Positions 4,216-31,174 are shown, numbered from the stretch's first letter. The stretch is DNA of 64,000 nucleotides from Isurus oxyrinchus (GCA_026770705.1 JANJGN010000004.1:190712001-190776000); one strand, 5' to 3'. Notes: generated by a model from the sequence alone, not told the origin. Numbers and translations: made by a program.

Positions 4216-4218
<3 letters not shown>

Positions 4219-4250
<32 letters not shown>
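4219..4250. repeat. (TG)n microsatellite
   Basis: About 16 TG units just upstream of the Myb gene ATG on the - strand. Confidence 0.95.
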
Positions 4251-4251
<1 letters not shown>

Positions 4252-6830: not shown

Positions 6831-6919
6831 GTTCGACGAGCACCAGACCTGCTGAGTTTTTCCAGCTGTTTTTGTTTTTGCTTCAGATTTCCAGCCTCCG
6901 CAGTATTTTGCTTTTAACC

Positions 6920-9900: not shown

Positions 9901-10900
9901 ACCCTATTTAAAAGGACCACTGGCTCGGGGTCGCACAACTCACCCCCGCTGGGCCCCGGGAACCCGCTCGGGGATGACGCCGGGGTCCAGCAGGTGGCGC
10001 CAAGGTGCACACGGGCCCCGGGAACCCGCTCGGGGACGACGCCGGGACCCAGCAGGTGGCGCCAAGGTGCACACGGGCCCCGGGAACCCGCACGGGGACG
10101 ACACCGAGTCCGGATGTTTGTACTTCCCCCGAGTCGGTATCTTCAGGGGTTTGGTGGTCCTGGGTGTTTTGGGGGGTTCTGGGGTGTCTCCCCCGGGTTG
10201 CGAGTCTTCCTCCACACCTTCTCACGGAGCAGGGGCTCTCCCTGCCCCCCCCACACCTCACCGGCAGCCGGGATGGCGGTGGCTGCCGGAGGCGCCTCCC
10301 CTTGGTGGGGAGGGAGATGGAGTGGTGGCGGGGGGAGGAGGGGGCGGTGTCAGCTGCGGCTGCTTGGATGGTGCTTGTGGCCTTGGCGGGGGGTGGGGAG
10401 GGGTGCAGTTCTTCCGCACATGCCCCACCTCCTTTACTGGCCATGGCACCGCACACCCTCGGTGGTCCAGAACGCTCTGTAGGCGGCCCCCTCCAGGCAC
10501 TCCTCCCGGGCCAGGTGGGTGAAAACCTGGCGCCGGAAGGAGTAGCCGTGTCGGAGGGACGCGTCCCTGATGCCCAGCGGGATCGGTGCTATCCCCGGAC
10601 CTGACCTCCCCCCCAGTTGTTGGAGGCGGGGGAGGAGGAGCTCACCGGGGACAAAGGGAAGGACGTTGGAAATGGTGAGCCTCTGGGCGGTGACCTCAAG
10701 GGGGTCCACGCCCAGGATGATGCCGCCCACAGTGAGCCCCTTTTCCAGGGCCAGGAGCACCTCCCGCTCGGACCTCAGAAAAAGGATGGCTTTGCCGCAC
10801 ATTTTAGAGGCTGAGCGGCAGATGAACCCAGTCATAGCCCTAACGCACACCTCGATGGTCATCTCAGGGTGAGGGTAGCTCTTCACCCCCAAGGCCTTGG
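6920..10900 (-). mobile_element. Tx1-like non-LTR retrotransposon, rearranged (ORF1 ~10892-8900; ORF2 APE from 8823; RT core missing; C-terminal zf-RVT region)
   Basis: GVKSYPHPEMTIEVCVRAM..LEKGLTVGG; frameshifted zinc knuckle (VRCHG..KEVGHVRKNC); ITSLNTHGSRD..FLQESH endonuclease start; WRVLHAVVPYN..CSLVESV; LFLGLAKLVINRSR. Confidence 0.82.
9951..10105. repeat. 62-bp tandem repeat (~2.5 copies) inside Tx1 ORF1
   Basis: GGGCCCCGGGAACCCGC recurs at 9951, 10013 and 10075. Confidence 0.9.
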
Positions 10901-10904
10901 TGAC

Positions 10905-11800
10905 GAGGACGGCTGGTTAACAGTGAGGTTGAGTGTCTTGGGCTATAGGAAGATATAGACGGGATGGTCAAATGGGCAGATAAGTGGCAGATGGAATTTA
11001 ACCCTGAAAAGTGAGAGGTGATACACTTTGGAAGGAGTAATTTGACAAGGAAGTATTCAATGAACGGCATGACACTAGGAAGTTCTGAGGAACAAAGGGA
11101 CCTTGGTGTGTGTGTCCATAGATCTCTGAAGGCGGAGGGGCATGTTAGTGGGGTGGTGCAAAAGGCATATAGGACACTTGCCTTTATCAATCGAGGCATA
11201 GATTACAAAAGTAGGGAGGTCATGTTGGAATTGTATAGAACCTTGGTGAGACCACAGCTGGAGTACTGTGTGCAGTTCTGGTCGCCACATTATAGGAAGG
11301 ATGTGATTGCATTGGAGGGGGTGCAGAGGAGATTCATCAGGATGTTGCCTGGGATGAAACATTTAAGTTATGAAGGGAGGTCGGATAGACTTGGGTTATT
11401 TTTGTTGGAGCAGAGAAGACTGAGAGGTGACCTGATCGAGGTGTACAAGGTATGAGGGGCATGGACAGGGTGGATAGGGAGCAGCTGTTCCCCTTAGTTG
11501 AAGGGTCAGTCACAAGGGGACATAAGTTCAAGGTGAGGGGCAGGAGGTTCAGAGGGAATGTGAGGAAAAACTTTTTTACCCAGAGGGTAGTGAGTGTCTG
11601 GAATGCACTGCCTGGGGGGCTGGTGGAGGTGGGTTGCACTTTCAAAAGTGCCTGGATGAGCACTTGACATGTCATAACATTCAAGGTTATGGGCCAAGTG
11701 CTGGTAAATAGGGTTAGGTAGGTAGGTCAGGTGTTTCTCATGTGTTGGTGCAGACTCGATGGGCCGAAGGGCCTCTTCTGCACTGTGTGATTCTGTGTGT
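10905..11800 (+). mobile_element. 5'-truncated CR1 LINE
   Basis: WQMEFNPEK..LYRTLVRPQLEYCVQFWSPHYRKD..RLRGDLIEVYK..FFTQRVV, then the typical 3' tail GGGCCGAAGGGCCT. Confidence 0.92.
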
Positions 11801-13914
11801 CAGTCCAGGGCCTCTTCCCTGTGCTCTGTGCAACCTTCAGACCACAGTGATGGTCCAGCCTCACTCCCTGGAAACATTACTGATGCCTGCACCTCGATGG
11901 TGCTTGTCATTGCTGCCAGAATGTTGTGGGCAGGTGCCACAGAGTTCTCTCATACTCTTCTGTGCTCTTTAAGGTGTGCTGGCCCACATCACACCAGCAT
12001 CTGCGACCAGTGATGCTGTACACCAGCTCCTGAAGGGCTGAGGTGCTGAAGACAGACACAGCAGCAGATGCGTCTAAAGTTTCATAGCTGCGTCTCTGAG
12101 ATGGCCCTGATCATGGAGCAAGCGAGCTGCCCTCAGCCAGACAGGAGTCAGACATTCTCAGAGGAGATGGGAAGATCTATGGAGTGTCCTCACCGCATGT
12201 TGTCATCATCTTCCTGCGACTGAGTGACTATTGGGGCCTCCCCTGCATCTCCATGACAGGAGTGTTCTCACAGAGGGTATAGGTGCTGCTGTAAGACAGG
12301 CTGGAGTCAAATGTTCACAAATGTAACGTGAGGATCTATGGGGACACCTCACTCCATGTCATCATCATCCTCCACAAATCTGGCAGCTTTGAGGACCTCC
12401 TGAGTGCGCCTGCCTCATCTGGTCAGTGTGAGAGCCTCATCTCCATTGTCATCACCACCGAGGATCCCCTCACCCTCATCCCCATCGTCATCACCACCGA
12501 GGATCCCCTCACCCTCATCCCCATCGTCATCACCATCGAGGATTCCCTCACCCTCATCCCCATCGTCACCACCGAGGATCCCCTCACCCTCATCCCCATC
12601 GTCACCACCGAGGATCCCCTCACCCTCATCGTCACCACCGAGGATCCCCTCACCCTCATCCCCATCGTCATCACCACCGAGGATCCCCTCACCCTTATCG
12701 TTATCACCGAGGATCCCCTCACCCTCATCGTCACCACCGAGAAGCCCCTCACCCTCATCGTCACCACCGAGGATCCCCTCACCCTCACCCTCACCGTCAC
12801 CACTGAGGATCCCCTCACCCTTACCACCGAGAATCCCCTCACCCTCATCCCCATCGGCGTCCTCATCAGAGGAGACCTCCAGCTCCTCCATCTCCTCCTC
12901 AGCCAGCTCCTCACCCCATTGCAGCGCCAGGTTGTAAAGGGGCAACAGACGACGATGATGTGTGACACCCTCTGTGGACTGTATTGCTGGGATCCACCAG
13001 ACCGGTCCAGGCACCGGAACCACATCTTCAGCATCGCGATGGTCTGTTCCACCAAGTTGCGAGCTGCTGCATGAGCCTCATTACAGCGTCGCTCTGCTGC
13101 AGTCTGAGGCTGCTGCACGGGTGTCATCAACCACGGCCTCTGTGGGTAGCCCTTGCCCCTAAGGAGCCAACCCTGTAGCCTCTGTGGGCCCTGGAAGACT
13201 GCAGGGATCTGTGAGTGACTCAGGATGTAGGCACCATGCACCCTCCCTGGAAACCGTGCACATATCTGCAGGATGTGTTCCTGGTGGTCGCACACCAGCT
13301 GCATGTTCAGTGAGTGGAAGCCCTTGTGGTTGATGAAGTCCACTGAGTGTAGCGATGGAGACCTGAGCACCACATGAGTGCCGTGAATCACACCCTGTAC
13401 CTGTGGGAATCCCGAGATCAGGGCAAATCCAATGGTCCCTGCACCCTGGCTGTCCCAGTCCCGGGCGAAATGCACAAAAATGTGTTCCATGGAGAAGGTG
13501 GCATCTGTGACCTCATGGATATGTTTGTGGGTGGCAGATTGTGAAATCCCACAGAGTCACCTGTGGAGCCCTGAAAGGAGCCACTGGCATAGAAACTGAG
13601 CACCGCAGTCACCTTCACAGCCACTGGCAGTGGATGCCCTCCATGTCCTCTTGGGGCCAGATGTGATTCTTGATGAAAAATGTAAAGGCCCGCCTGGCTG
13701 ATTCGCCCGTCCGCCTACCATAAGGGTGGACGGACCACAAAAAAAAAATCGCAGACAATTGCACCACCAGTGGGCTTAATATCCCTCTTAACTGTCGGCG
13801 GGCTGCTTCTGAGTCTTGCACGCGTCCACTGAGCGACATCGGGATGCTCGCCCGACGTCTTCTTGCGCGATTTTATGCTCGATCAGGTTGGGCGCGGGAC
13901 GTAAAATTCAGCTC
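11800..13914 (-). mobile_element. Harbinger transposase remnant plus terminal region
   Basis: GFPQVQGVIHGTHV..FINHKGFHSLNMQLVCD..RFPGRVHGAYIL..GWLLRGKGYP..VEQTIAMLKMWFRCLDRSGG. TIR-like AAAATTCAGCTC at 13903-13914. Confidence 0.87.
12450..12880. repeat. Minisatellite (ATCGTCACCACCGAGGATCCCCTCACCCTC variants) in the transposase acidic tail
   Basis: About 12 units. Encodes (D)DEGEGILGGD repeats on the - strand. Confidence 0.92.
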
Positions 13915-13922
13915 CTTGGTTG

Positions 13923-14069
13923 TCTTGAACAGACTTCCTGTTGGCCAGTTATTTCAGGCCGATTTCTCAACGTTTGGGCTGCTTCACAGGAAGAGAAGAA
14001 ACACTTCTTTATTTCGGTGTCAAGACACAAGAAGCAGTGAGGGAAAGACGAAACACTGAAGAGTTGGCG
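13923..14069 (+). promoter_or_regulatory. Proximal promoter/5'UTR with ETS-type motifs (ACTTCCTG 13933-13940, ACAGGAAG 13987-13994)
   Basis: Block is highly conserved with 44353-44506 in the paralog. GGAA cores present, no obvious TATA box. Confidence 0.45.
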
Positions 14070-14130
14070 ATGAGTTCTCTCCACATTTGGCTTTCCATCG
14101 TCCTGCTGTTAGTCCCGGTGCGGGGTTACA
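14070..14130 (+). CDS. Exon 1: signal peptide [20 protein letters not shown]
   Basis: ATG in GGCGATGA context, hydrophobic leader, phase-1 donor A|GTAGGT at 14131. Nearly identical in the paralog at 44507-44567. Confidence 0.85.
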
Positions 14131-17100
14131 GTAGGTGCTTTCGAATTATATCTGTTCAAATTCGTTGTGTTTCGTAAATTGTCCTTTCTATCATTTCACT
14201 GCAGGGTTGGGAGTGGGTGAATGTTCAGTGCAGGGTCAGAGCAACAGGGTGGGGTAGAAAGATTGTCAGGTTTCTAGCAAGATACAAAGAACGTGAAACA
14301 GGAGTAGGCCATTCAGCCCCTCGAGCCTCTGCCCAGATTCAGTAAGATCATAAAAACAAAGAAAACTGCGGATGCTGGAAATCCAAAACAAAAACAGAAT
14401 TACCTGGAAAAGCTCAGCAGGTCTGGCAGCATCGGCGGAGAAGAATCGAACTCCAGTTCTGTCGAAGGGTCATGAGGACTCGAAACGTCAACTCTTTTCT
14501 TCTCCGCCGATGCTGCCAGACCTGCTGAGTTTTTCCAGGTAATTCTGTTTTTGTTTCAGTAAGATCATGGCTGACCAATATCCTAATTCCATCCACCTGC
14601 CTTGGTTCCATATCTCTCAGTATCCTCACAAAACAGAAACCAATCAATCTCAATCCAGATATTTTTAATTGACCCCCACCATCAATAGATCCCCATTTTC
14701 ACTGAGGTTCCTGACTTCAGTCCTGAACAGCTCAGCTCTAATTTTAAGGTTATGGCCCTCATCAGAAGAAATCCATTGATCATTTTCAGGGTCACAAGCA
14801 GACCCTCTGTTGTTACAGATGTAAACGAGATGACCAGTATTAAGTCCTGAAGTGTTCAGAGAGTATTGTGTCTGAAGAGCAAGTTCCCACTGTCACTGCA
14901 TCCAGGATTGGATCCTCAAACCCTATAACGAGAAACCACCGGGATCACTTGATTGGAATCCAGCCTGTAACTCACTCCATAGTGTCCAATGTCAGTCTGC
15001 AAACTATCCCGAACCTGACTGTGAGATATCCATTTTCACGATTAACAGACTTGGTATATCAGTCTCGTAGTTTGTTTTCAGAATGTTTGATGTCTGTCCA
15101 TGCGCTGTTTTCATATTCTCTCTCTCTCACTCTCAATCCCCCTACAGAGACTTCGGTTCGTGATTGGACAATGATGGTCGCGGATGATGTGCGGGTTCGG
15201 GAAGGGGGATCCGCTATCCTGCCCTGTCGTTTCACCCACCCACACACTCACCGCAGGGTCAACGGCTCCGTGATGTGGTACAAACTTCCCGCAGACCTTC
15301 ATGATCCTGTTTTTAAATGTACATATCCTGGTACAGACCATTCACAGGGTGAACTGTGTGAGAATGTGAGACAGCGGGACAGTGGGAATCGATTCAGATT
15401 CGTGGGGAACCTCAGCAGCAACGATCTCTCAATAATGATGGAGCGGCTGAGCCGGGAGGATACCGGTCAATATCGGTGTCGTGTGGAGCTCAATGTGGGC
15501 AAATTGGAAGCACCAAGAGGAACGAATCTGACAGTGGAAGGTGAGGATCAATGTTCAGGGGTTGTAGCTGCCCTGAGAGTTCAATGCCTGCTCTGGGAGC
15601 TGAATTTCACCCCAAACGGTTCCTGAATGGGACAATTTCCATTGCTCTGGTTAGCAGAAGTTACCTGAGAAAAGGGAACAATGAGAGAGACACAGAGTGG
15701 GAGAAGGGGAGAGGGAGAGAAGGGGAGAGGGGGGTGAGGAGAGGGGGAAGGGGAGGGGAGAGGGGGAAGGGGAGAGGGGAAAGGGTGGGGAGAGAGGGGA
15801 GGGGAGAAGGGGAAGGGGAGGAAGGGGAGAGGGGGAAGGGTGGGGAGAGAGGGGAGGGGAGAGGGGGAAGGGGAGGAAGGGGAGAGGGGGAAGGGGCGGA
15901 AGGGGGTGGAGGAAGGGGAGAGGGGGAAGGGGAGGGTGGGAAGGGGAGGAAAGAGGTGGAGATAGGGGAGAAGGGGAGGAAGGGGAGGGGAGGAAGGTGA
16001 GAGGGGCAAGAGGAGAAAGGGGAGAGGTGGAAGGGGAGGGTGGGGAAAGGGAGGGGGAAGGGGAGAGGGGGAAGGAGAGGGGGAGGGGACGGGAGAGGAA
16101 GGAGAGAGGGGGAGGGGGAGGGGGAGGAAGGGGAGGGGGGAAGGGGAGAGGGGCAAGGGAAGAGGGGGAAGGAGAGGGGGAGGGGACGGGAGAGGAAGGA
16201 GAGAGGGGGAGGGGGAGGGGGAGGAAGGGGAGGGGGAAGGGGAGAGGGGCAAGGGAAGAGGGGGAAGGGGAGGAAGGGGAGAGGGGGAAGGGGAGGGTAG
16301 AAAGGGGAGATGGGGAAGGGGGGAGGGGAGGAAGGGGAGAGGGGGGAAGGGGAGAGGAGAAAGAGGAGAGGGGGAAGGGGGTGGAGGTAGGTTAGAGGGG
16401 GAAGGGGAGGGTGGGAAGGGGAGGAAGGGGGTGGAGGTAGGGGAGAGAAGGGGAGGGGAGGAAGGTGAGAGGGGGAAGGGGAGGAGGGAAGGGGGAGGGG
16501 GAGGGGGATGGGGAGAGGGGGGAGGAGGGGAGGGGAGGAAGGGGAGAGAGGGGAGGGGAGGGTAGAAAGGGGAGATGGGGAAGGGGGGAGGGGAGGAAGG
16601 GGGAAGGGGAGAGGGGGAAGGGGAGTGGAGGAAGTGAAGGGGGGAGGGGAGGAAGGGGAGAGGGAGGAAGGGAAGAGGGGGAAGGGGAGGAAGGGGAGAG
16701 GGGGAAGGGGAGGGTAGAAAGGGGAGATGGGGAAGGGGGGAGGGGAGGAAGGGGAGAGGGGGGAAGGGAGAGAGAAAGGGGGAGGGGAGGGGAGGGGAGA
16801 GGGGGAAGGGGAGAGGGGGAAGGGGAGGGGAGAAAGGGGAGGGGGGAAGGGGGAAGGAGAAAGAGGAGAGGGGGAAGGGGTGGAGGTAGGTTAGAGGGGG
16901 AAGGGGAGGGTGGGAAGGGGAGGAAGGGGGTGGAGGTAGGGGAGAGGAGGGAAGGGGAGGGGAGGAAGGTGAGAGTGGGGAGGAGGGAAGGGGAGAGGGG
17001 GAGGAGGGAAGGGGGAGGGGGAAGGGGAGAGGGGGGGGAGGGGAGGGGAGGAAGGGGAGGGGAGAGGCGGTGGGGAGGAAGGGGAAAGGGGGAAGGAAGG

Positions 17101-20100
17101 GGAGGGGGAGGGGAGAGGGGGAAAGGGTGGGGAGGAAGGGGAGAGGGGGAAGGGGAGAGGGGGAAGGGAGGGGAGGGGGTGGAGGTAGGGGAGAGGGGAG
17201 GAAGGGGGTGGAGGTAGGGGAGGGGGAGGGGAGGTAGGGGAGGGGGGGGAGAGGAGAGGAGGAAGTGGAGAGGGGGAAGGTGAGAGGGGCAAGAGGAGAA
17301 AGGGGAGAGGTGGAGGGGGGGTGGGGAAAGGGAGGGGGAAGGGGAGAGGGGGAAAGGGAGGGGGAAGGGGAGGAAGGGGAGAGGGGGAAGGGGCAGAAGG
17401 GGAGTAAGGGGAGGGGGGAAGGGGAGTGGAGGAAGTGAAGGGGGGAAGGGGAGGGGGAGGGGACGGGAGAGGAAGGAGAGGGGGAGGAAGGGGAGGGGAG
17501 GAAGGGGTGAGGGGGGAAGGGGCGAGGGGTAAGGGGAAGAAGGGGAGAGGCTGAAGGGGAGAGGGGTAAGGGGAGAGGGGGAAGGGGAGAGGGGGAAGGA
17601 GAGGGGAGGAAGGTGAGAGGGGCAAGAGGAGAAAGGGGAGAGGTGGAAGGGGAGGGTGGGGAAAGGGAGGGGGAAGGGGAGAGGGGGAAAGGGAGGTGGA
17701 AGGGGAGAGGGGGAAAGGGAGGGGGGAAGGGGAGGAAGGGGAGGGGGGGAAGGGGCAGAAGGGGAGTGGAGGAAGTGAAGAGGGGGAAGGGACGAGAGAG
17801 GAAGGAGAGGGGGAGGAAGGGGAGGGGGGAAGGGGAGGGGGGAAGGGGGGAAGGGGAGGGGGAGGGGACGGGAGAGGAAGGAGAGGGGGAGGAAGGGGAG
17901 GGGAGAAGGGGAGAGGCTGAAAGGGAGAGGGGTAAGGGGAGAGGGGGAAGGGGAGGGGAGGAAGGGGAAAGGGGGAAGGGGAGAGGGGGAAGGGGAGGGG
18001 GAAAGGGAGGGGGGGAAGCGGGAGAGGGGGAACGGGAGAGTGGGGGGAATGGGAGAGGAGGGAAGAGAGCGGGTAGAGAGACGGAGCGGGAGAGGGGGGA
18101 GCTACAGAGGGGGACAGATGGAGAGGGCGAGACTCAGGGAACGGAGAGACGAGGAGGGGAGGTCGGAGGAGGGAGGGAGGAGGAGAGGGGGTGAGACAGA
18201 GGGGGGAGGGGGTAGCCGGGATGAGACGGAGCGAGAGAGGGGAGGGGGAGAGATGGAGGTGTTGAGGGGCGGGGGAGCAGGAGGGGGTAGTCAGAGCGGG
18301 ATGGGGAGGTGGGAAATCAGGGGGAGAGACAGGGAGGCGGGAGGGGGGGAGATGGGGAGGGGGAGAAACAGGGAAGGGGGGGAGATGGGGAGGGGGGGAG
18401 ATAGGGAGGGGGGAAGATGGGGAGGGGGGAGATGGGGAGGGGGAGAGATTGGGGGAGAGAGATGGGGAGGAGGAGAGATGGGGAGGGGAAGAGACGGGGT
18501 TGGGGTTCGACAGGGGAAGGGGAGAGATAGGGAGACAGAGAGGGGGAGAGACGGGGGGGGAGATGGAGCGGGAGAGAAGGAGAGGGAGAGGGGGTAGAGG
18601 TGAGACAGAGCTGGGCAGTGGGAGTGGGGGGGTGAGACGGAGGGGGGAGAGATGGAGGGCGAGGGACAGAGCAGCGGAGGGTGGAGAGGGCGTGGGACAG
18701 AGCGGGGGACGGGAAGAGGGACAGAGTGGGAGGGCAAGGGACAGAGCGGGGGAGGGGTGTGGGACAGAGCTGGGGAGGGGTGTGGGACAGAGCGGGGGAG
18801 AGGGACAGAGTGCGGGAGGCGGAGGGGGAGAAAGCGGGGGAGGGTGGAGACGGTGAGGTTCAGAGCGGGGGAGGGGGAGGGGAGAGGGACAGAGCGAGGT
18901 AGGGGGTGAGTGCGAGGGATAGAGCGGGATGGGGGACAGAGCAGGGGAGGGGGAGAGTGCGAGAGACAGAGCGGGGGGAGGGGGAAAGGACGTGGGACAG
19001 AGCAGGGGAGGGGGAGAGGGACAGAGCGGGGGAGGGGGAGAGGGCGAGGAACAGACCGGGGTAGGGGGAGAGGGTGAGGGAGAGAGAGCAGGAGGGGGAG
19101 AGGTCAAGGGACAGAACGGGGAAGGGGGAGAGGGCGAGGGAGAGAGCGGGAGGGGGAGAGGTCAAGGAACAGAGCTGGGAGGGGGTGAGGGACAGAGCGG
19201 GGGATGGGGAGAGGGTGAGGGACAGAGCAGGGGAGGGGGAGATGGCGAGGGAGAGAGCGGGAGGGGGAGAGGAACAGAATGGGGGATGGGGAGAGGGTGA
19301 GGGACAGAGCGGGGGAGGGGGAGAGGGTGAGTGACAGAGCGGGGGAGGGGGAGAGGACGAGGGAGAGAACGGGAGGGGGAGAGGTCGAGGGACAGAGCGG
19401 GGGAGAGGGACAGAGCGAGTGAGAGAGGGGGAGGGGGAGAGGGTGAGGGACAGAGCCGGGGACAGGGCGAGGGACAGAGCGGGAGCGGGAGGAGGAGAGG
19501 GACAGAGCGGGGGAGGGGGTGAGTTACAGAGTGCAGGAGGGTGGCGAGGTCGAGAGACAGAACGAGAGGGGGAGGGACAAAATGGGGGAGGGGGACAGAG
19601 TGGGGAAGGGGGAGAGGGCAAGTGACAGGGAGAGGGAGGAGGCGAGGGACAGATCGCGAGAGCCGGGAGGGCAACAGAGTGGGGCAGGGGGAGACAAGGG
19701 GAGGCGGAGAGGGAAAGAGGGAGATGGAGAGATAGAGCAGGAATGGGAGAAACAGGAAGACGGTGGGGGTACAAGCATGAGCACGAGACGAAGGGGTGAG
19801 GGGGCGAGTATGAAAGTGAGATGGGGAGAGGGGGTAAGCATGAGGGTGACACAGGGGAAGATTTGACGAACATGAGCACGAGACAGAGGAGGAAATGGGA
19901 TGAAATAATGGATGCGTTGGTGGTTATGTTTCAAAATACCATATATTCCAGAGAGGTTACTGCAGACTGGAGCATTAAGCAGCTTTTAAAAAGATTTTAT
20001 ATGTAGTTATATTTTAAACTTGACGAAGAAATTGATTATTGTGCACCAATGCAACTAGTGAAATTTCCTGAAGCTTTTAAGGGAGGTTTTCAGTTAATTA

Positions 20101-23100
20101 AAATCGAATTACTCAGGTCATGGGCAAAGCACAGAATCAAAGCACTTATTCTAATACTGTGTTTTGTAGCATTATTAAGAAAGCTGTGCCACGTTCTTAC
20201 TCAAATATAATCAAGGAATATTTTTAATGCAAAACCTTTTATAAAATAATAAACTTAAAATGCTGTTCAATCCCCCTCTGAGTTTGGGCAGATAACTGAA
20301 CAAAAATTCTGAAAACTAGTGAAATTTTGAGTGTAATTTTCACTTAGATCTTCGATTGCACCCAAAGCATAAACTTAAGCAGTGAGTGGAGCGTACTTGA
20401 AAGAAACAGGTGACTTTGGTCCTATGGTTTCCACAACTCTCCACCACTGGGGCCTTTCCTCATTTCCTGTTGTAGACTAATGAATTGAGATTAATCATGA
20501 TTAATCAACCATCCCCTTATCGTTTTATCTTATGATTATGAATCTTGGTCAGAAACTTTATCCTTTCAATCATTTCCTTCAGCTTTTGAACATCTTCCCA
20601 AGTAGTGACAACTGACTCCCTTGCAGGTAATTGAGAACAGATCACATGGTTGAATGCACAAACCTTGTGACTGTGTCCCAGGATTTTATGACTGCCCGTT
20701 TCTCCGTCTCCGTTGCTCTGATGATGCTACCTTCCACTTCTAGTTGTATTTCTTTATTCTAAATAGAAGACTTCCCTCCACGGTGATTGATGGGGCTCTC
20801 GATCATGCTCATCCCATTTCTCATACTTCTACCCTCATCTCTTCCCACACCTCCCCCCCCCCTCCTCTCCCTCCCTCCCTAAACCATGATAGGGCTCCAC
20901 CTTTGACCTTATCTTGTGTGATCCGTGCACAATATCACTTTGATCCTTTTCTCCACATGTAACAGATCACCCTCCATCAAGACTGCCACTTCCATGAAAC
21001 CATCGCCAAACACATCTTCTCCTCCACTTCCAGAATTTTGAAGGGACCATACTGTCCACTGTACATTGCTCCACTATGAAGTGCCATTAGCTGCACTTTA
21101 ACCTTCCTCCAATGTTGCCACTGAGAGCGAATGAATCTTCTGGACATTCCACCTCAGCAAGTAGGAACAACACAGAATAAACTGAGCAGCACGCACTACA
21201 CAGGGAACAATACTGAAAGTGCCTGAGGGAGGAAAAAATATCCAGGTGATATCATGTACAGATCACTCAAGATTCACAACCAATGCATAGATGACAAAGC
21301 AAACAGGATATTGGGTTGTATTAATACAACCTTTCAATTTAAGTTAAACCACTTTCCATTTTTAGCTAGAGTGTGAAATGTCCCTTGCGTCCTACCTGCC
21401 AATTCCTGTTTTGTAGCCATCTTCCAATCTGTTCTGTACCTGACCCCTCAGTCCCTGGGATATTTACTGGCTGAGACTACATTGGGAAATGCCTCTACCT
21501 ACTAGTCCTCAGGGAGAGCTGTAAACAGAAATACATTGCTGTTCTCATTGTTACAAATATCTAGTTCATGGTTGATGTTAATATTTTAGAGGTAATATTT
21601 GGTTCTGGGAAGATTATTGTTGAGAAGGTAAGGTAATTAAAATGCTGGGCTTCTGTGATTGCCAGAACACCTAAAAATAGCAGTTCAAAAGGTTACTCAT
21701 GTTTATTGTTTAGTGCAGTTCAAATAGAAGAGATAGAGTTACAAAACAGCAGGTGGGTTTACTCAGCTGGAGATATTGTAAGTGAGGGATAATTAGCTTT
21801 AAGGTCAGTTTGAAGATAGCCCTAGAGCAGGCTACATCATCATGGAGCTGGGTGGAACTTAGGAAGAATCCCTGGTTTCAATTTAGCTGGGTATTTGCTG
21901 GGAGAAGTCTTTTAGTTGCAGTTTGGACCTTGTGTGGTTTGCACCGCATTGAGAGAAGTTGGGAAAAATAAATGGCAGATATATCGGCATCGAGAGCAGA
22001 GTGAAACACTAAAATCATCAATGACTGCGGGTGAAGTTTCATCTCAGTTTGAATCTTGAGGAACAGAAGCCAGAAGATTGCTTAGTTTGAAGCTAGTGGG
22101 AGAATCTACTATAAGCCTCACAGTGACTTATTGCAAAAGAAATTAACCAGCAGATTAGCTTGGAAGTCATGGAAAAGTAACTAGAACAAGGAACTGAAGT
22201 CTCCACAGTCAAGAGAGGGCAAATGAAAGTATTACCACTGAGAATAGCTGGAGCTGAGAAGAATTCTCCAGAGGACTGTGGCATACTTACGGGTGGCTCA
22301 TAAAGAATTAAATAATGTTAAGGTTGATGTGACTTATAACAGAATTCTTGGGGGAAGTAGGATGTAAATTTGGGTGCATAACGTACATAGCCGTCTGTCA
22401 TATTAAGGCAGAGGTAGATAGGTTCCTAACTAACAAGGGAGTCAAAGGTTATTGAGGGTAAGCAGGGATGTGGAGGTGATCCATGGTCATATTGAAGAGT
22501 GGAGCAGGCTCAAAGGGCCAAATGGTCTACTTCTCCTAATTTATATGTTCGAATAGTTATAAACCATATTGTTAAATTAATAGTGCTTGTTTTATTCTAT
22601 TATATAACACAGTGAATTCTTGTGGCGTAGTTTTATTAGTTTAAACAAGGATTTGGGATTTCTTTCTAAATGTTAATGTCCCCTAACCAACTGTAACATC
22701 ATCCAGACAATGATCATTCTGATATTTGTTCTTTCCTCAGCTGCTGGTAGAAATGACTCAGTGGTGAGCGGGACAGAGGGAGATTCGGTTACATTGCCCT
22801 GTATGTTCACACCCAATAACTCTTTCACCCTGACCACTGTTACATGGATAAGGAAGGATCCCGACCAAAACGTAGTCACATTTCAAGCCCAATTAAATGG
22901 ATCATGGATAGTTGTAAATGCTGGAAATCGGTACAAGCTTGTCGGGAACCCACAGAAGGGAGACGTGTCAATCATGATAAACCAACTGAACATGACGGAC
23001 AATTGCACTTACCTCTGTGTGGTGGAGTACACAGGACCATCTGATTATCAATATCTGATCCAGAATGAAAAATGGCTGCAGGTCATACATGGTGAGTAAT

Positions 23101-26100
23101 CACTCCCAGGGTATAGAGTGTAACAGTGATGGAAAGGAGTCAGTCACTGTGGCTCAATTGGGAGCTCTCTCATCTCTGAATCAGGAGGTCATAGGTTCAA
23201 TTCAACTCCAGAGATCTGAGCATAAAGTCTAGGCTGACATTCCAGTGTAGTACTGAGAGACTGCTCTACTTTTGGAATTGCTGCCTTTCAAAACAGTAAT
23301 TAAGCTTAGGCCCTGCCTGTCCTCTCAACTTCATGTAGAAGATCCCACATCACTATTTTAAAGAAGAGTGTGGGAGTAATTCCTGGCATTGTGTTCAATA
23401 CTTATTTCTGAAAGAACATCACTAAAACATATTGTCTGGTCACTATCTCATCACTGCTTATGGGACCCTGCCGTTTGCAAAATAGCTGTGGTACATGCTG
23501 CATTAAAACAATGTCTACACTTCAAAGAAAAATTCCACCATTCAGTTAGATCATGGCTGACCCGCATCCTAAATCTATTTACCTGCCCCTCTTCCACAAT
23601 TCTTAATATCCTACTCTAACAAAAATCTATTAACCTCAGTGTTGAAATGTTCCACTGAGCCTCAGCCTCGACAGGATTTTAATGGGGAGGGTTCCAGATT
23701 TTCAATTTGTGTGAAGAAGTGCTTCCTGACACCAGCCATGAATGGTCAAGCTCCAAATTTGCCATTATGTCCCCTTGATCTACCCTCACCGGAGGAAACA
23801 GTTTCTCTCAACACTCCATTTAATGATCTTAAACATTTCAATCAGTTCACCACTTAATCTTGTATACTCAGAGTATATAAATGTTTTCTCTGTAACCTTT
23901 CCTCATAATTTAATAATTTTAAAAAGTTCATTTCTGGGATGTGGGTGTCACCGACTAGGCCAGCAATTATTGCCCATCCCTAATTGCCCTTGAGAAGGTG
24001 GTGGTGAGCTGCCTTCTTCAACTGCTGCAGTCCCAGCGGTGTAGGTATACCCACAATGCTGTTAGGGAGGGAGTTCCAGGACTTTGACCCAGCGACAGTG
24101 ATGGAATAGCCAATATTTTTCCAAGTCAGGATGGTGAGTGGCTTGGAGGGAGCTACCAGGTGGCTGTGTTCCCATGTGGCTGCTGTCCTTGTCCTTCTAG
24201 ATGGTAGCGGTTGTGGGTTTGGAAGGTGCTGTCTAAGGAGCCTTGGTGAATTCCTGCAATGCACCTTGTAGATGGTACACACTGCTGCTACTGTGTGTCG
24301 GTGGTGGAGGAAGTTAATGTTCGTGGATGTGGTGCCAATCAAGCAGACAGCTTTTTCCAGGATGATGTCAAGCTTCTTGAGTGTTGTAGGAGCTGCACTT
24401 ATCTAGGCGAATGGGGGGTATTCCATCACATTCCTGACTTGTGCCTTGTGGATGGTGGACAGGCTTTGGGAAGTCAGGGGATGAATTTCTCGTCTCAGGG
24501 TTCCTAGCCTCTGACCTGCTCATGTAGCCACAGTATTGATATGGCTAGTCCAGTTCAGTTTCTGGTCAATGGTAACCCCCTGGATGTTGATAGTGGGGGA
24601 TTCAGTGATGGCGATGCCATTGAGCATCAAGGGGCAATGTTTAGATTCTCTCTTGTTGCAGATGGTCATTGCCTGGCACTTGTGTGACTTGAATGTTATT
24701 TGCCACTTGTCAGCCCAAGCCTGGATATTGCCCAGGTCTTGTTGGATTTGGACATGCCATCTTCAGTATCTGAGGAGTCGCGAATGGTGCTGAACATTGT
24801 GTAATCATCAGCAAACATCCCACTTCTGCCCTTATGATGGAAGGAAGGTCATTGATGAAGCAGCTGAAGATGGTTGGGCCAAGGACACTACCCTGAAGAG
24901 CTCCCTCCTGCAGAAATGTCCTGGAGCTGAGATGACTTGACTTCCAACAACCACAACTATCTTCCTTTGTGTTAGGTATGATTGTGATTTGTAGAGAGTT
25001 TTCCCTATGATTCCCATTGACTCCAGTTTTGCTAGAGCTCCTTGACGCCACACTCTGTTAAATCCAACTTTGATGTCAAGGGCAGTCACTCTCATTTCAC
25101 CTCGGGAGTTTAGGTCTTTTGACCATGTTTGGACCAAGGCTGTAATGAGGTCAGGAGCTGAGTGGCCCTGATGGAACCCAAATTGGGCGTCAGTGAGCAG
25201 GTTATTGCTAAGCAAGTGTCGCTTGATGACACTGCTGATGACCCCTTCCATTACTTCACTGATAATCGAGAGTAATTGACTGGGTTGGATTTGTCCTGCT
25301 TTTTGTGTACAGTACATACCTGGGCAATTTTCCATATAGCCGGGTAGATGTCAGTGTTGTGGCTGTACTGCAACAGCTTAGCCAGGGGTGCGGCAAGTTC
25401 TGGAGCACAAGTCTTCGGTGCTATTGTTGGAATATTGTCAGGGCCCATAGCCTTTGGGTTATCCAGTGCCTTCAGCTGTTTCTTGATTTCACATGGAGTG
25501 AATCGAATTGGCTGAAGACTGGCATCTGTGATACTGGGGACCTCCAGAGGAGGCCAAGATGAAACAATCACTCGGCACTTCTGGCTGAACATTGTCGCAG
25601 ATGCTTCAGCCTTATCTTTTGCACTGATGTGCTGGGCTCCTCCATCATTGAGAATGGGAATATCTGTGGAGCTTCCTCCTCCAGTGAGTTGTTCAATTGT
25701 CCACCACCATTCATGACTGGATATGGCAGGACTGTAGAGCTTAGATTTGATCTGTTGGTTGTGGGATCGCTTAGCTCTGTTTATCACTTGTTGCTTATGT
25801 TGTTTAGCATGCAAGTAGTCCTGTGTTATAGCTTCACCAGGCTGACATCTCATTCTTTAGTATGCCTGTTGCTGCTCCTGGCATGCCCTCCTGCACTCTT
25901 CATTGAATCAGAGTTAAACCCATGACTTGATGGTAATGGTAGACAGGGGGACATGCTGGGCCATGAGGTTACAGATTGTGTTTGAGTACAATTCTACTGC
26001 TGCTGATGGCCCACAGGCGCCTCATGGGTGACCAGTCTTGAGTTGCTAGATCTGTTCGAAATCTATCCCATTTAGCAAGATGGTAGTGCCACACAACATG

Positions 26101-29100
26101 CTGGAGTGTATCCTCAAAGTGACTTTGTCTCTACAATGACTGTGTGGTGGACACTCCTCCTGGTGGTCACTCCTGTGAAAGACCAACATAAAACAAGTGA
26201 CAGATGGACCTTTGTTGGGGGGTGGGGGGTGGTGGTGGCAGTGTGGGAGAATGGGAGGGAGGGAGCCGTGGTTGGCGAGAAAGGATAAAATAGAGGATGG
26301 AAAGGGAGATAAATGGTTAAAGTGAATTAATAAAAATGAAAATAAGTAAATAAAAAATAAAAATAAACTTTTAAAAAGGAGTGAAGACTCCCTTCTTTTA
26401 AAATTTATTTTTAATATTTATTTACAATTAAAAAGGAATGAAGAATCACTTTTTTGAATTTATTTTTTATTTACTTATTTTCATTTTTATTCATTCATTC
26501 ATTGTATTATCCCCCTTTTTTATCCATTATCCCCAACCACCACTGACCCCCACCCCCTCCACCCAAAGGGCCATCTGTCACTTGTCTATGTTGTTCTTTC
26601 ATAAAGTGCTGACTGCTGACCCTTTGTTATGGCACAGCCGATGGTAAATGCTGGTGAACTTGAAACAACTGCCACAACTTGTTTTGCAATTTGTGTAAAT
26701 TTCGAGATGCATGCCTTGAATTCAGTAGTAATAAGATCACCAAGTCTAATTGATTTCTTACCAAACTAAGTTAAATATTTATTAATAGAAGAAATGATTT
26801 TAATTACATACATAGATCTACAAATTACTACTATGATAACTTCTAAATCCCCTAATTAATCTAACTCCCAGTTAAACTTTCATTAAGACACATAGATTTT
26901 AAAAGACCCAGGCAAAGAAACATAATATCCTGAAACAGTAGAATTCAAAGTGAGCTTTCTTAACTTCAGGTCTCTGTAGACAGCAGTTTGAGGTGTAGAT
27001 GCCGAAGGCTTTTCACACATGTTAGATCTTAAACTGCCTTCCCTTACACACAGACTTTGCTCCTTTATACATATTTTCCCCTTTGAATGCAAATTCCTAT
27101 TGTTTCACTATGTCTTTGGACTTTTCCTTTCTGATAATAAAATCCTCTCATATCGCTAATTTTACCAGTAATCTTTGGGAAAAATAAACACACTGTTTCT
27201 AAACTTCACCTGGCTAGGTGATACATTTCACCCCTCCTTTGAAAACAATCTAATCTGGTTTATTTTAAAATTCAGAAGTCCTTTTATACCTTACATTCTA
27301 AACTTCCCCCATGTTTACATAAAAACCTTCAGACCAGCTGCCTTTAATCCAATTAAGTCACACACACACCACTATTTTACAATAAATTTCAATAATATTA
27401 TTATATCTTCCTGACACCTTGTTCTGCAATTAACACATTCTACTTTCTTACCTTTATGCCATTATCGGCACCATTTTTAGTCCACTACCATTCACACTCC
27501 CTTTATATTGTGTCAATCTCTCCTTAGTTCCCACCTATCATTGACCTTCTATCCTGCTTTACCTGCTCCACCCCCTTAAACAGTATAATTTCCATCACAC
27601 TTCTACTTCTCTTTAGCTCTGAAGAAGAGCTGCACGGACTAGAAACGTTAACTTTGTTTCTCTCTCCACAGATGCTGTCAGACCTGCTGAATTTTCCCAG
27701 CATTTTCTGTTTCTATTTCATATTTCCAGCATCCACAGTATTTTGCTTTTATCATATTATTGGTACGATCCATTTGTTGTTTTTTATCCACAGTACATAC
27801 TCTTTGCCTAGTTCAGCTACATTACCACAATATTTTTGCTCTGCAATTGAGTTCCAAACTTGTCTACAGACTTTAATTATTGTTTCCACATTGCTGGGCT
27901 CTCATCTTTTCTTGTCTCTGATTTGATCTCTCTTCCTGTTCAGTTGCAAAGACTTTACCCATTGTGACATTGTGCATTCCGCTTGGAGTGAAACTCCTTT
28001 CCCTTCTCGTGATGTGGATCATTTTATACAGGGACAAAACCAGGTATGGAATATTGCTGGGAGGCTTTTGCCTTTAAATGCCTAGAGTTCAATTTATGGA
28101 TGAACTTTGGTCAGTGTGTGTTGGCAGGTGATTGAGACAATGACCACACAGTACACGTCCAGCAGATGTCACTGGATACCAGCAGGAACAGGAACCCTGG
28201 GCAACGTTTCTTCTCCCTATCCCAATAGCACTTAGACCAATTGGAGGGACCCAAATGCAGCCCAGCGGGGATTGGCTAACTCAGCCCAGATAGGGAATCG
28301 AAACCAGCCCTTCCTAGTCTGTACAATTCAGTTCCTCACAGCATGAACTTGCTGAACTTTGGGGGCCTGGTTAAAACTTCTTGACCACCTCCATTCACTA
28401 GAATCTAGTGGAATCTTAAGTTTAGTTTCTAGTTTAGAATCTAAGGGGAGGCGATGGCATAGTGGTATAATCACCTAACTAGTAATTCAGAGACCCAGGG
28501 TAATGCTCTGCGGACCCAGGTTTCAATCCTGCCACGGTCGATGGTGAAATCTTAATCCAATAAAAATCTGGAATTAAAAATCTGATGACGACCATGAAAC
28601 CATTTTTGATTGTTGTAAAAACCCGTCTGGTTCACTAACGTCCTTTAGGGAAGGAAATCTGCCATCCTTACCTGGTCTGGTCAACATGTGACCCCAGAAT
28701 CACAGCAATGAGGTTGACTCTTAAAAGCCCTCTAAACTAGGGTAACTAGGGATGGGTAATAATTGCTGGCCTGGCCAGTGACACTCACATCCCATGAGCT
28801 AATAAAAAAAAGTGTTATTTGTACAGTGCTGTTAGGAAGGGAGTTTCCATTTTTGATCCAGGATGATGTGTGGCTTGGAGTTGCAAGTAACTCAACTCCT
28901 GATTCCCCAAAGCCTGTCCACTATCTACAAGGCACTAGTGAGGAACATGATGGAATACTCTTCACTTGCCTGGATGAGTGCAGCTCCAACAACACTCAAG
29001 ATGCTCAACCATCCAGGACAAAGCAGCCCACTTGATTGGCTCCCCATCCACCACCTCCAATGTCCATTCCCTTCACAACCGAAGTACATTGGCAGCAGTG

Positions 29101-30111
29101 TGTACCACTTTCAAGAGGCACTGCAGCAATTCACCAAGGCTCCTTAAACAGCACCTTCCAAACCTGCAACCACTACAACCAAGATGGGAACACCAGCACC
29201 TGCAGGTTCCCCTTCAATTTGCACACAATCCTGACTTGGAAATATATCGCCGTTCCGTTACTATCCCTGGGTGAAAATCCTGGAAATCCCTCCCTAACAG
29301 CACCATGGGTATACCTACAGTACATGGACTGGAGCGGTTCAAGAAGGTGACTCACCACCACCTTCTCAAGGCAATTAGGGATGGGCAATAAAACTGCTGT
29401 CCTAGCCATTGATGTCACGCCCCATGAAAGAACAACAAAGAATTCCTAGCATCTGATCTGCTCTTGTAACTACAGTATTTGTAGGGCTGGTCATGTTCAG
29501 TTTTTGGTCAATGACCATATTTTAATCTCTTTTGACTAGAATTTACATTGTGTGTGAATGATGCCTACTAGAGAGACAGTAATAATATTCTGATTTAATT
29601 TGACAAGTTTCCTTTGTTTTGTTCATAATTTAGTGGGTTTTGTTTATGTCCCTTTAAAAAGATTAATCCACTTTCATTAGATTGATGTTGTTTTGTTTAA
29701 TACTGCGGGTGTCATCCTGAGAGGCCAAAGAAAGAGTAGAAAGTAGAGACAGAAAACATGATTTAACTTGTTAATTATCCTTCAGTTTTGGTCACCTGAG
29801 CTAATATCTCCTTTTGTAGCTCAGACCTTCCACAGATTACACTGATGTGAAGCAGTTTGGGGTTCTTTGCTAATATTAAAGGTGGTATGTAAATGCAAGT
29901 TGTTCTCAGAAACAGGATCAGAAACAGGAACAGCAATCAGCCACATTGTTTCAGTATTCACGCTGATTCTGATCTGTTATTAAATGTGTTGGGTATTCTA
30001 TTTAAACAGCTGCTGGTCGTGTGTGGCGGTGCTGAAAATTCTCTTATCTTACTGTTAATATGCCTCATTGTAATTGATCTCCTTTTTGTTCCCAGAAAGG
30101 AGCAGGACTGA
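14070..30111 (+). CDS. Siglec-15-like Ig-superfamily type I membrane receptor (leader-IgV-IgV-TM(Lys)-short tail), 306 aa; join(14070..14130,15148..15540,22741..23091,27944..28043,30096..30111)
   Basis: Five exons with GT..AG introns in compatible phases (1,1,1,2). Exon lengths 61+393+351+100+16 = 921 nt, open to TGA at 30109-30111. Domain motifs match the Siglec-15 V-set and the Siglec-15 TM lysine. Confidence 0.88.
14352..14556. mobile_element. Short Penelope-like terminal-repeat insertion with inverted arms and ~12-14 bp TSD
   Basis: TTCAGTAAGATCAT at 14338-14351 and 14555-14568. Arms 14387-14445 and 14497-14556 are reverse complements. Confidence 0.8.
14455..14493 (+). ncRNA. Minimal type I hammerhead ribozyme-like motif
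   Basis: AGTT-CTGTCGA-A-GGGTC/ATGAG/GACTC-GAAAC-GTC-AACT: stem I AGTT/AACT, stem II hairpin, GAAA core, palindromic ACGT helix III. Confidence 0.65.
15148..15540 (+). CDS. Exon 2: Siglec-15-like IgV domain 1
   Basis: Pyrimidine tract with CCTACAG acceptor, donor G|GTGAGG. Translation [71 protein letters not shown] mirrors Siglec-15 (LPCTFTHPH, VFRC..ELC, RFRLLGN..NDLS..ERL..D..YFCRVE). Confidence 0.93.
15680..19880 (+). repeat. ~4.2 kb polypurine G/A low-complexity array, grading into GGGACAGAGCGGGGGAGGGGGAGA-like units
   Basis: Almost only G and A on the + strand. Source of the spurious G/E/R- and P/S-rich ORFs. Confidence 0.95.
20640..21130 (+). mobile_element. Ancient Penelope-like element coding fragment (homolog at 52660-52745 and 54523-54900)
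   Basis: [34 protein letters not shown] resembles the linker region of fish Penelope-like ORFs (recognition from memory). Confidence 0.55.
22741..23091 (+). CDS. Exon 3: second IgV domain
   Basis: Acceptor CTTTCCTCAG, donor G|GTGAGT, phase 1/1, 117 codons. V-set motifs [24 protein letters not shown]...D..TYLCVVE. Confidence 0.9.
23140..23530 (+). mobile_element. tRNA-derived DeuSINE (SacSINE1/AmnSINE1-like)
   Basis: Box A (TGGCTCAATTGG) and box B (GGTTCAATTC) head. Deu-domain-like GATCCCACATCACTATTTTAAAGAAGAG..ACATCACTAAAACA..CTACACTTCAAA. Confidence 0.7.
23925..26170 (-). mobile_element. LINE (CR1/L2-group) RT fragment with 3' tail
   Basis: [64 protein letters not shown]. Confidence 0.88.
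26625..27416. mobile_element. Solo LTR (Gypsy-like), 792 bp
   Basis: TGTTAT...TGACA termini flanked by the 4-bp TSD CCTT (26621-26624, 27417-27420). Confidence 0.72.
27615..27653 (+). ncRNA. Degenerate minimal hammerhead motif (canonical CTGAAGA core)
   Basis: AGCT-CTGAAGA-AGAGCTGCACGGACTA-GAAAC-GTT-AACT inside a Penelope-like terminal repeat. Confidence 0.55.
27944..28043 (+). CDS. Exon 4: transmembrane segment with intramembrane Lys ([33 protein letters not shown])
   Basis: Long pyrimidine tract with TTCAG acceptor, donor AG|GTATGG. Hydrophobic stretch followed by a basic stop-transfer. Not in the ORF track; translated manually. Confidence 0.87.
28445..28811 (+). mobile_element. tRNA-derived SINE with LINE-derived 3' tail
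   Basis: TGGCATAGTGG box A, GGTTTCAATCC box B. Tail GGGATGGGTAATAATTGCTGGCC..CACATCCC followed by an A-run, shared with neighbouring LINE fragments. Confidence 0.8.
28870..29440 (+). mobile_element. LINE 3' fragment (same family as 23925-26170)
   Basis: [40 protein letters not shown]. Confidence 0.85.
30096..30111 (+). CDS. Exon 5: short cytoplasmic end (R)KEQD*
   Basis: CTTTTTGTTCCCAG acceptor, phase 2 matching the exon 4 donor. A homologous exon with the stop in the same place is at 61828-61843. Confidence 0.75.
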
Positions 30112-30391
30112 TCCATCACAGGAGATTGAGAAACCTAATGTACAAACTGCAATTTAAACCTGTTCCACTCGTCCTGCACTCAATCTCAGCCAGCAATTTA
30201 AGATGGACTTGCTTAAGTGATTATTCACTCTGCGATCCTGGGTCCTGAGTGCAAAATTCTTCTGGTTAATCAGCTATTTGGCATGGTTCTGCATCACGCT
30301 GTGGTGATCATTTAGTCTTGGTGGGAGAGTGCAACACGGGTGAAAGTGAATCAACAGCCTGATTAAAATCTCTGTCATTGGTTGGAATGGA

Positions 30392-30397
30392 AATAAA
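30392..30397 (+). promoter_or_regulatory. Candidate polyadenylation signal AATAAA (alternative at 30753-30758)
   Basis: First AATAAA about 280 nt after the stop codon. Confidence 0.4.
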
Positions 30398-31174
30398 AAT
30401 GGGGAAGGATGTAAAACTGGATGCTGATTGGCTGTTTTACACTAATGCACCAAGTCTAAATGATCCCAATACTCCAAATGGAATTTGAATATAAGCATGC
30501 TCAGTATAACTATAATGTAAATAGTGGGAGAGCTCATGTGGCAGAGCTGACTGTGAGTAGGACAAGTTTGAACTGCCAATTATTACAGGTGCTTTGCTCA
30601 GGGAACTGGCTGCTGCTTCCAAGTCCTTGGCTGTGATGGGAGATTCTGTGGAGGTCAGCCTGCTTTCAATAAGTGATCTCAGAGCGAATCTGTGCTTTTA
30701 CTGTCAGTCTAGCAACGTTACAAGATGGAGCTGCAATGATTGTGAAAAGTGCAATAAATGAACAATTGCATGTGTGTGTACCTTGACCCCTCTTTAGTAC
30801 TAAGTTGCACTACATTTCATGGAACCATGGGGCACAGAAGCAGGCCATTCAGCCCATCATGCTATCCAACAAGTCCCGCTTCCCTGTTCTCTCCTCATAA
30901 CCCTGAAAACGTTTCTCTATCCAATTTCCAATTGAAAATACTATTGAATATGTTTCCATCTTCTTTTCAGGCAGCACATTCCATATCAAATCTTTGTAAA
31001 AAACGTTTCTTTAAGCTGCTTCTAGTTATTTTGCTAGTTACCTTAAATCTGTATCCTCTGGTTACCCAATACTGACCTGTACTGAACACTTAAAAAAAAA
31101 ACAATCTCAGGATGTGGGTGTCCCTGATAAGACGGGTATTTATTGCAGAGGGAGTCTTACTCTGCATCGAACCT

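Follow-up and report, generated by a model that had tools for sequence, protein, structure and literature searches.

What does a Siglec-15-type lectin domain become when the C2 domain that usually follows it is replaced by a second V-set domain? Siglec-15 is usually counted in the small number of Siglecs that vertebrates have kept as one conserved V-C2 gene, and a locus in the shark Isurus oxyrinchus raises this question directly. The locus occupies positions 14070-30111 of a 64,000-nucleotide stretch of the genome assembly (GCA_026770705.1 JANJGN010000004.1:190712001-190776000), which we refer to as the window and whose positions are counted from its first letter. It holds five exons that together predict a protein of 306 amino acids (aa), running from a leader through two immunoglobulin (Ig) V-set domains, here called V1 and V2, to a lysine-bearing membrane span and a short tail, YRDKTRKEQD. 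With a probability of about 0.7, we consider this to be an intact gene, and the activating, adaptor-coupled form of an elasmobranch-wide paired receptor family from the Siglec-15 lineage. The evidence for this reading comes from the exon structure of the gene, from the V1 domain and the membrane exon, and from the relatives of the gene in other cartilaginous fish.

Gene structure

All five exons lie on the plus strand. Exon 1 (14070-14130) opens with the ATG start and encodes the signal peptide plus one base, ending in phase 1 at the donor ACA/GTAGGT. Exon 2, which encodes V1, spans 15148-15540 (acceptor AG at 15146-7, donor AAG/GTGAGG, phase 1), and exon 3, which encodes V2, spans 22741-23091 (acceptor AG at 22739-40, donor ATG/GTGAGT, phase 1). 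Exon 4 (27944-28043; acceptor AG at 27942-3, donor CAG/GTATGG, phase 2) supplies a stalk, the membrane span with its central lysine, and the start of the tail, YRDKT; exon 5 (30096-30111; acceptor AG at 30094-5), read in the frame that follows the membrane exon, completes the tail with R-KEQD and a TGA stop at 30109-11. On direct reading, all eight splice sites are canonical AG/GT, a pyrimidine tract precedes each acceptor, and the frame is continuous. The exon lengths of 61, 393, 351, 100, and 16 nt sum to 921 nt, or 306 codons and a stop, and the 306 codons are free of stops and frame shifts. A weaker exon 1 donor at 14125, which would give a protein of 304 aa, was dropped in favor of the donor at 14131, which is closer to the consensus; the latter yields the junction ...RGY-K-TSVRDW, matching ...QSY-K-ISVNNW in Carcharodon.

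Shark proteins match these exons by tblastn at levels far above chance: E values are 1e-80 for V1, 2e-56 for V2, 6e-11 for the membrane exon, and 1e-6 for the last exon. The exon 1 leader is 86% identical to that of Cetorhinus LOC144692089. Searches were run exon by exon, and full-length relatives were sought with the stop-free frame 14868-15623, limited to its V1 residues. All words of the V2 exon are contained in four small sequencing runs from one sample, which may be of DNA or RNA.

The V1 domain

V1 is a Pfam V-set domain (1.4e-13). Its best relative among solved structures is human Siglec-15 (7ZOZ, 9e-17) and the next family is CD33 (6.5e-7); in this sequence search, V1 lies much nearer to Siglec-15 than to CD33 or Siglec-8. 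The alignment with 7ZOZ pairs the N-terminal Trp and the motifs LPC-FTHPH, VF(K/R)C, ELC, and Y-C-R-VE. The YRC-R-VE of V1 (YRCRVE, 15471-15488) stands opposite the human YFC-R-VE, with the F-strand arginine kept, and all four Siglec-15 cysteines are present at aligned positions: in LPC (part of LPCRFTHPH, 15219-15245), VFKC (15309-15320), ELC, and YRC. In human Siglec-15, these cysteines form the disulfides C64-C142 and C95-C104, and sialic acid is held by a salt bridge to R143 and by contacts with W44, Y87, Y154, and backbone groups (PMC10264397). Equivalent B-F and C'-C'' disulfides would be expected in V1, the C'-C'' loop being of low confidence in the structural model.

That model, predicted with AlphaFold from 45 homologues, has a predicted local distance difference test (pLDDT) score of 83, and a fold search with it returns 7ZOZ first, at a template-modelling score of 0.81-0.84, a root-mean-square deviation of 2.2 Å, and 36% identity; CD33, sialoadhesin, and Siglec-7, -8, -10, and -5 follow. 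The F-strand position is arginine in 37 of the 45 aligned V1/Siglec-15 domains. Among 1.84 billion representatives, the closest single-domain matches to V1 from outside the Chondrichthyes are the Siglec-15 proteins of mammals, birds, frog, and carp. Sialic-acid binding by V1 is a plausible prediction. One residue sets the Isurus copy apart: the leucine at 15504-15506 (VGKLEAP) is unique to it among the aligned homologues.

The V2 domain and the absence of a C2 domain

The second domain is likewise V-set by Pfam (3.2e-17), spanning model positions 3-108 of 109. Its structural model (pLDDT 90) has nine strands, C' and C'' included, and its fold neighbors are all V domains (VSIG4, nectin-1, and sodium-channel beta-2 among them), with the V domain of Siglec-15 at the top (template-modelling score 0.82). 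The simplest view is that V2 arose long ago by duplication of this type of V domain and has since diverged, given that its best single-domain solved relative by sequence is the Siglec-15 V domain (2.8e-9) and V1 and V2 match each other at about 6e-10. Its motif YLCVVE has no F-strand arginine; in every one of the 32 homologues compared, this cysteine is followed by L, V, or Q and never by Arg. V2 is 77-82% identical to its counterparts in Cetorhinus and Carcharodon, and carries five N-glycosylation sequons and one extra cysteine. This cysteine, unpaired, falls at 23004-23006 (DNCTY) within an N-C-T sequon, and is unique to the Isurus copy among the aligned homologues.

A search by tblastn with 249 family proteins, C2-bearing ones included, recovered no C2-like exon from the introns or flanks (the window minus 26328-26381). 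Within the gene, these proteins matched the five exons only, and nothing Ig-like in the introns.

The membrane span and the last exon

A conserved membrane exon, opening with CIP(L/I)G(V/L) and closing with (Y/L)RDK, is shared by activating members of the family, and exon 4 shares 71-74% identity with its equivalents in proteins of Heterodontus, Rhincodon, and Scyliorhinus. Its ten-residue membrane-span motif lies at 27979-28008, and PLGVKLL of the Isurus span aligns with PLGxK of bird, frog, and lungfish Siglec-15. Combined into a profile, ten membrane exons from sharks and rays match the Siglec-15 spans of bird (FVPLGIKVLILLV), frog (ALGAKTLILLL), and lungfish (ALGIKLLL) in the lysine register, at E 0.003-0.7 among 249 sequences; scores of this modest size are what 20 hydrophobic residues can be expected to give. 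With the same profile, inhibitory shark spans score E 2.7 or worse and show no lysine register. The membrane motif and V1 thus provide two separate exons that tie the gene to Siglec-15.

The tail ends in RKEQD (30094-30108) and lacks a YxxL/I/V motif, and the C-terminus of Rhincodon LOC125482802 (P0024) is identical to the Isurus YRDKTRKEQD. In Siglec-15, the membrane lysine is required for association with DAP12/DAP10 (PMC7226832), and by analogy the Isurus lysine would be expected to support pairing of the same type.

The last exon can be read in two frames. In the second (30096-30157, plus strand), it encodes a 20-aa peptide followed by a stop (the last 19 residues and the stop occupying 30098-30157), and would be read if exon 4 is skipped or if the AG at 30098-9 is used. 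Skipping of exon 4 (100 nt) leads the phase-1 end of V2 into this frame as E-RSRTDPSQ..., and annotated isoforms of other sharks end in this way, directly after V2 and with no membrane span: a Pristiophorus isoform (P0023) ends ...LQLVH-ERSRTDPPQEAEKPNVQTAV, and a Heptranchias isoform (P0039) ends ...LQVFQ-RRSRNDSSQEAEKPNVQTAI. Heterodontus isoform X1 (P0008) enters the second frame after the membrane exon, a route that corresponds in the Isurus window to the second AG, four bases downstream, at 30098-9. Because the second-frame peptide is conserved across four shark orders, it suggests that a secreted form belongs to the receptor system, and a membrane-less isoform is predicted for Isurus as well.

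An earlier note on this DNA had described five in-frame exons for 306 aa, a Siglec-15-type V1 with the arginine and an extra cysteine pair, a second domain of V-set rather than C2 type, and a membrane lysine in a Siglec-15-like motif above a tail with no tyrosine signalling motif. This description holds up throughout: splice sites are canonical and phases compatible, each motif it quoted lies where it was placed, V1 has 7ZOZ as its best match by both sequence and fold, the V-set assignment of V2 agrees with Pfam, the nine-strand model, and the lack of a C2 exon in the locus, and the profile register and tail reading bear out the membrane assignment.

An elasmobranch receptor family

How widely is this architecture shared? 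A word-indexed search with V1 returned 34 shark proteins, the nearest being Carcharodon LOC121276821 (90% identical in V1; 89-90% across searches), and a HMMER search of the 1.84 billion representatives returned 371 matches. Members named in a sample of these came from sharks (Mustelus, Heptranchias), from rays and skates (Narcine, Leucoraja, Rhinoraja, Mobula, Amblyraja), and from a chimaera. At least 16 genera of sharks and rays, with more than 30 annotated proteins between them, show a V1-type domain followed by a V2-type domain, and domain scoring of 239 proteins identifies V1-V2 as the standard module, with some proteins extended to V1-V2-V1 or V1-V2-V1-V2. The layout is therefore old and shared, rather than peculiar to the Isurus gene. 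Full models with leader, V1, V2, and a lysine-bearing transmembrane (TM) span are annotated in Heterodontus, Scyliorhinus, and Rhincodon. Several of the automatic RefSeq entries for the family are named Siglec-15 (for example, Heterodontus "Siglec-15 isoform X1"), and some "pIgR-like." The Isurus gene shows the family order of leader, V1-type domain (four Cys, CRVE), and V2-type domain (two Cys, YLC[LVQ]VE), together with the two features of activating members, namely the conserved membrane exon and the last exon read in two frames.

Many relatives combine the same V1-V2 ectodomain with an uncharged span and a tail bearing motifs such as ILYAEI, VTYAAV, or VIYAAV. Within a species, the activating and inhibitory ectodomains are 81-91% identical (Heterodontus, 91%; S. 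torazame, 81%; S. canicula, 85%). The two nearest relatives of the Isurus gene, in Carcharodon and Cetorhinus, carry the inhibitory type of tail and not the lysine membrane exon; no inhibitory tail exons were found within the window.

Multiplied V domains of this kind also occur in lungfish. Protopterus annectens has multi-V Siglec-15-like proteins, one (P0035, 1128 aa) with seven V domains and another (P0051) with two; all of these V domains have the four cysteines and the CRV arginine and are followed by a C2-type domain, and P0051 has a lysine span. Cartilaginous fish are therefore not alone in having multiplied the V domain of Siglec-15.

The searchable literature yielded no paper describing an elasmobranch Siglec-15-like family, and none on shark DAP12. 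The earlier note had foreseen a multigene family in cartilaginous fish, and the shark, ray, and chimaera relatives confirm it; its further proposal of a lineage-specific V-V layout does not stand, that layout being standard across sharks and rays and already present in automatic RefSeq annotation. "Purely activating," as the note put it, fits the membrane form of this gene; it fails for the family, which includes paralogues with immunoreceptor tyrosine-based inhibitory motifs (ITIMs) and a probable membrane-less isoform.

Relationship to canonical Siglec-15 and other receptors

The Isurus gene shares with canonical Siglec-15 the V fold with its B-F and C'-C'' cysteines, the arginine of C-R-V-E, the N-terminal Trp, a lysine span of the form (P)LGxKxLxLLV, a tail with neither an ITIM nor an ITAM (immunoreceptor tyrosine-based activation motif), and an arrangement of one exon per domain in phase 1. 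It differs in having a V-set rather than a C2-set domain next to the membrane, in a tail of 10 residues against some 45-65 in tetrapods, and in belonging to an expanded paired family rather than being a single conserved gene. The G-strand loop of V1 is also three or four residues shorter than that of Siglec-15, although carp Siglec-15 is likewise short. In comparison with the predicted Siglec-15-like proteins of other elasmobranchs, the leader-V1-V2 order is the same, at 60-90% identity in V1 and 58-82% in V2, and activating members share the membrane exon and either RKEQD or second-frame tails. The V1 leucine and the extra V2 cysteine are, by contrast, unique to Isurus, and the Isurus protein itself is absent from the collection searched.

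A second group of proteins, of V-V-C2-TM architecture, also has two related V domains at the N-terminus (Callorhinchus LOC103174418, P0058; Heptranchias "Siglec-12 isoform X3," P0059; Protopterus "Siglec-15 isoform X2," P0051), and those of Callorhinchus and Protopterus have, like the Isurus gene, a lysine in the membrane span. These proteins keep a third, C2-type (Ig_3/I-set) domain, which the Isurus gene lacks. Bird and frog Siglec-15 are colinear over V-C2-TM with the Callorhinchus and Heptranchias proteins, whereas they match V1-V2-TM proteins domain by domain only; the chondrichthyan V-V-C2-TM proteins are closer to the canonical Siglec-15 architecture than the Isurus gene is.

A maximum-likelihood tree of 60 V domains recovers a clade of shark and ray V1 domains and a separate V2 clade, with Isurus V1 and V2 each adjoining their Carcharodon counterparts; its deep order is unresolved and long branches are present. 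On the sequences compared, we would file the gene as an elasmobranch Siglec-15-like V1-V2 member and a possible orthologue of SIGLEC15.

CD33-related Siglecs combine V and C2 domains with tails that are usually of ITIM type; the Isurus gene has neither the C2 domain nor a tyrosine motif in its tail. Paired Ig receptors include Siglec-14/5, Siglec-16/11, KIR, LILR, and teleost NITR. The elasmobranch family resembles these in placing near-identical ectodomains on either a charged span with a stub tail or an uncharged span with an ITIM-like tail, and in its tandem clusters with decayed copies; it is unlike them in having an ectodomain of the Siglec-15 branch composed of two V-set domains. The skate MDIR, reportedly described by Cannon et al. 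in 2006, are said to be activating and inhibitory multigene Ig receptors with a distant likeness to pIgR/CD300 and with domains of I- or C2-set type; the present family resembles this description as a multigene set of activating and inhibitory Ig receptors in elasmobranchs, some of them named "pIgR-like" by NCBI, and departs from it in its V-set domains.

The surrounding window

The window also contains a partial tandem duplicate of the gene, in two pieces (44350-45700 and 61806-61930). Its 5' flank and leader are 92.8% identical to those of the intact gene over 432 bp, and the leader near 44507 encodes a peptide identical for 17 residues. The V1-like exon of the duplicate (45391-45672), about 77% identical, has a stop and frame shifts and has lost both canonical cysteines; the last exon is duplicated as well, at 61.8 kb, and no copy of the V2 or membrane exon was detected for the duplicate in the window. 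Three weak Ig V-like tblastn matches (E 0.004-0.02), at 38932-39069 (minus strand), 9572-9697 (plus), and 56872-57075 (plus), may be remnants of more decayed family exons.

Besides the exons of this family, the open reading frames (ORFs) of the window are of transposon origin only; they lie at 872-1519 (plus), 12426-13556 (minus), 24835-25350 (minus), 47026-47727 (plus), and 59945-60742 (minus). Fragments of a Harbinger-type DDE_Tnp_4 transposase occur upstream of the gene, and both intron 3 and the region of the downstream paralogue contain reverse-transcriptase and endonuclease fragments of long interspersed nuclear elements (LINEs). Harbinger pieces, like LINE pieces, are also present in the introns. 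A segment at 61061-61321 (minus) matches the C-terminal 80 residues of two Narcine bancroftii proteins (P0045, P0234) at E 5e-10, and may be a transposon piece captured in the Narcine models or an unrelated exon. Much of intron 2 consists of some 3.9 kb of GA-rich sequence made up of purines only (15695-19561), with degenerate periods of 6, 14, 30, and 58 nt and a GC skew of up to +0.98. The 10 kb upstream of the gene (4000-14000) have a GC content of 0.56-0.61, against about 0.40-0.46 in the rest of the window, and proline/serine-rich repeat ORFs lie at 12.3-13.1 kb. Past the gene, a pattern scan gives two candidate polyadenylation signals (AATAAA) by consensus match only, one at 30392-30397 on the plus strand, 281 nt past the stop, and another at 30753-30758.

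Alternative explanations

Several observations weigh against reading this gene as an expressed, sialic-acid-binding, adaptor-coupled member of the Siglec-15 lineage. The tree does not group V1 exclusively with Siglec-15; long-branched V domains of CD22, sialoadhesin, and CD33-like type adjoin the shark V1 clade, and the approximately unbiased (AU) test neither rejects nor proves a single Siglec-15-like clade (p = 0.25). The adaptor is not readable from the sequence, and expression of the gene is predicted here from genomic DNA. Of the residues with which human Siglec-15 contacts sialic acid, only the arginine and the tryptophan are kept in V1, Y87 is not conserved, and leucine stands in Isurus at the Y154 position, where 36 of 45 homologues have F or Y. 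The gene could accordingly be real and activating, with a V1 that is no longer a sialic-acid lectin and that keeps its fold and arginine by descent while binding some other ligand; V1 and V2 would then form a fast-evolving recognition surface, as in paired receptors that track pathogens or self. In keeping with this, some family members have H, S, G, C, or N in place of the arginine, V2 is conserved and rich in glycosylation sequons while having no such arginine, and zebrafish Siglec-15 bound the tested glycans poorly (PMC7226832). Yet the arginine has persisted in 37 of 45 domains over some 400 million years, the Isurus gene among them, the CRVEL motif and both cysteine pairs are intact, and the fold neighbors that rank after Siglec-15 are all sialic-acid-binding Siglecs. 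We regard loss of sialic-acid recognition as unlikely, though worth taking seriously, and a lectin of the Siglec-15 type remains our preferred reading of V1.

The remaining alternatives concern the integrity and the product of the locus. The gene might be silent, or on its way to being lost, within a birth-and-death cluster, either a young pseudogene or one not expressed as modelled: the partial duplicate 30 kb downstream is already decayed, the introns are rich in transposon fragments in addition to the purine tract, and two residues, the V1 leucine and the extra V2 cysteine, are found in no aligned relative. The coding sequence itself speaks otherwise, with no stop or frame shift in 306 codons, eight canonical splice sites, every family-invariant residue that was checked kept, both frames of the last exon open and conserved, and a V1 that is 89-90% identical to an annotated Carcharodon gene. 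The decay of V1 in the neighboring duplicate, set against the intact copy here, speaks for constraint on the latter, and we consider a dying copy very improbable. Somewhat less improbable, if still rather doubtful, is that the main product is something other than the five-exon membrane form, whether a secreted V1-V2 protein, a V1-only protein, or one beginning with V2 from the in-frame ATG at 22710. Annotation records membrane-less isoforms for Pristiophorus and Heptranchias and, for other sharks, V1-TM forms that lack V2 (P0040, P0025), and all Ig exons are of phase 1-1, so the skipping of one of them preserves the frame; the ORF at 22710 also starts with a short hydrophobic run. That run, however, is simply what the polypyrimidine tract of a good acceptor gives on translation, and V1 and V2 have no leader-like exon between them, while the full L-V1-V2-TM(K) models of Heterodontus, Scyliorhinus, and Rhincodon argue for the five-exon form as the main product.

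Proposed function and significance

Taken as an intact activating receptor, the gene would be expected to work as follows. V1, with its Siglec-15 fold, both disulfide pairs, and the F-strand arginine, would be the presumed ligand-binding domain. V2 would most likely act as a spacer or as a second, non-sialic-acid surface, because it occupies the place of C2 and never carries the arginine. The membrane lysine would most likely pair with the aspartate of an ITAM adaptor of DAP12/DAP10 type, since no signalling motif is present in the tail. The inhibitory counterpart would come from paralogues whose ectodomains are 81-91% identical but whose spans are uncharged and whose tails are ITIM-like, and skipping of the membrane exon would produce a secreted form ending in the conserved 20-aa peptide.

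The gain from a single Isurus gene is modest, automatic annotations of its relatives having already recorded the architecture, and the weight of the finding rests more on the family. The locus nonetheless offers a well-supported case in which a Siglec-15 lectin-type domain and lysine anchor occur within a V-V multigene paired family of sharks and rays. Tentatively, and at somewhat less than even odds, the elasmobranch V1-V2 genes may be the expanded descendants of a single Siglec-15, diversified into fast-evolving activating, ITIM-inhibitory, and secreted forms. If so, the family would independently parallel the CD33-related Siglec cluster of mammals, with a second V-set domain replacing C2, and its dual-frame last exon would switch between membrane-bound and soluble products. 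Should binding prove to depend on sialic acid, these receptors would represent an old and independent case of activating and inhibitory Siglec pairing, as well as a natural experiment on the part played by the membrane-proximal domain.

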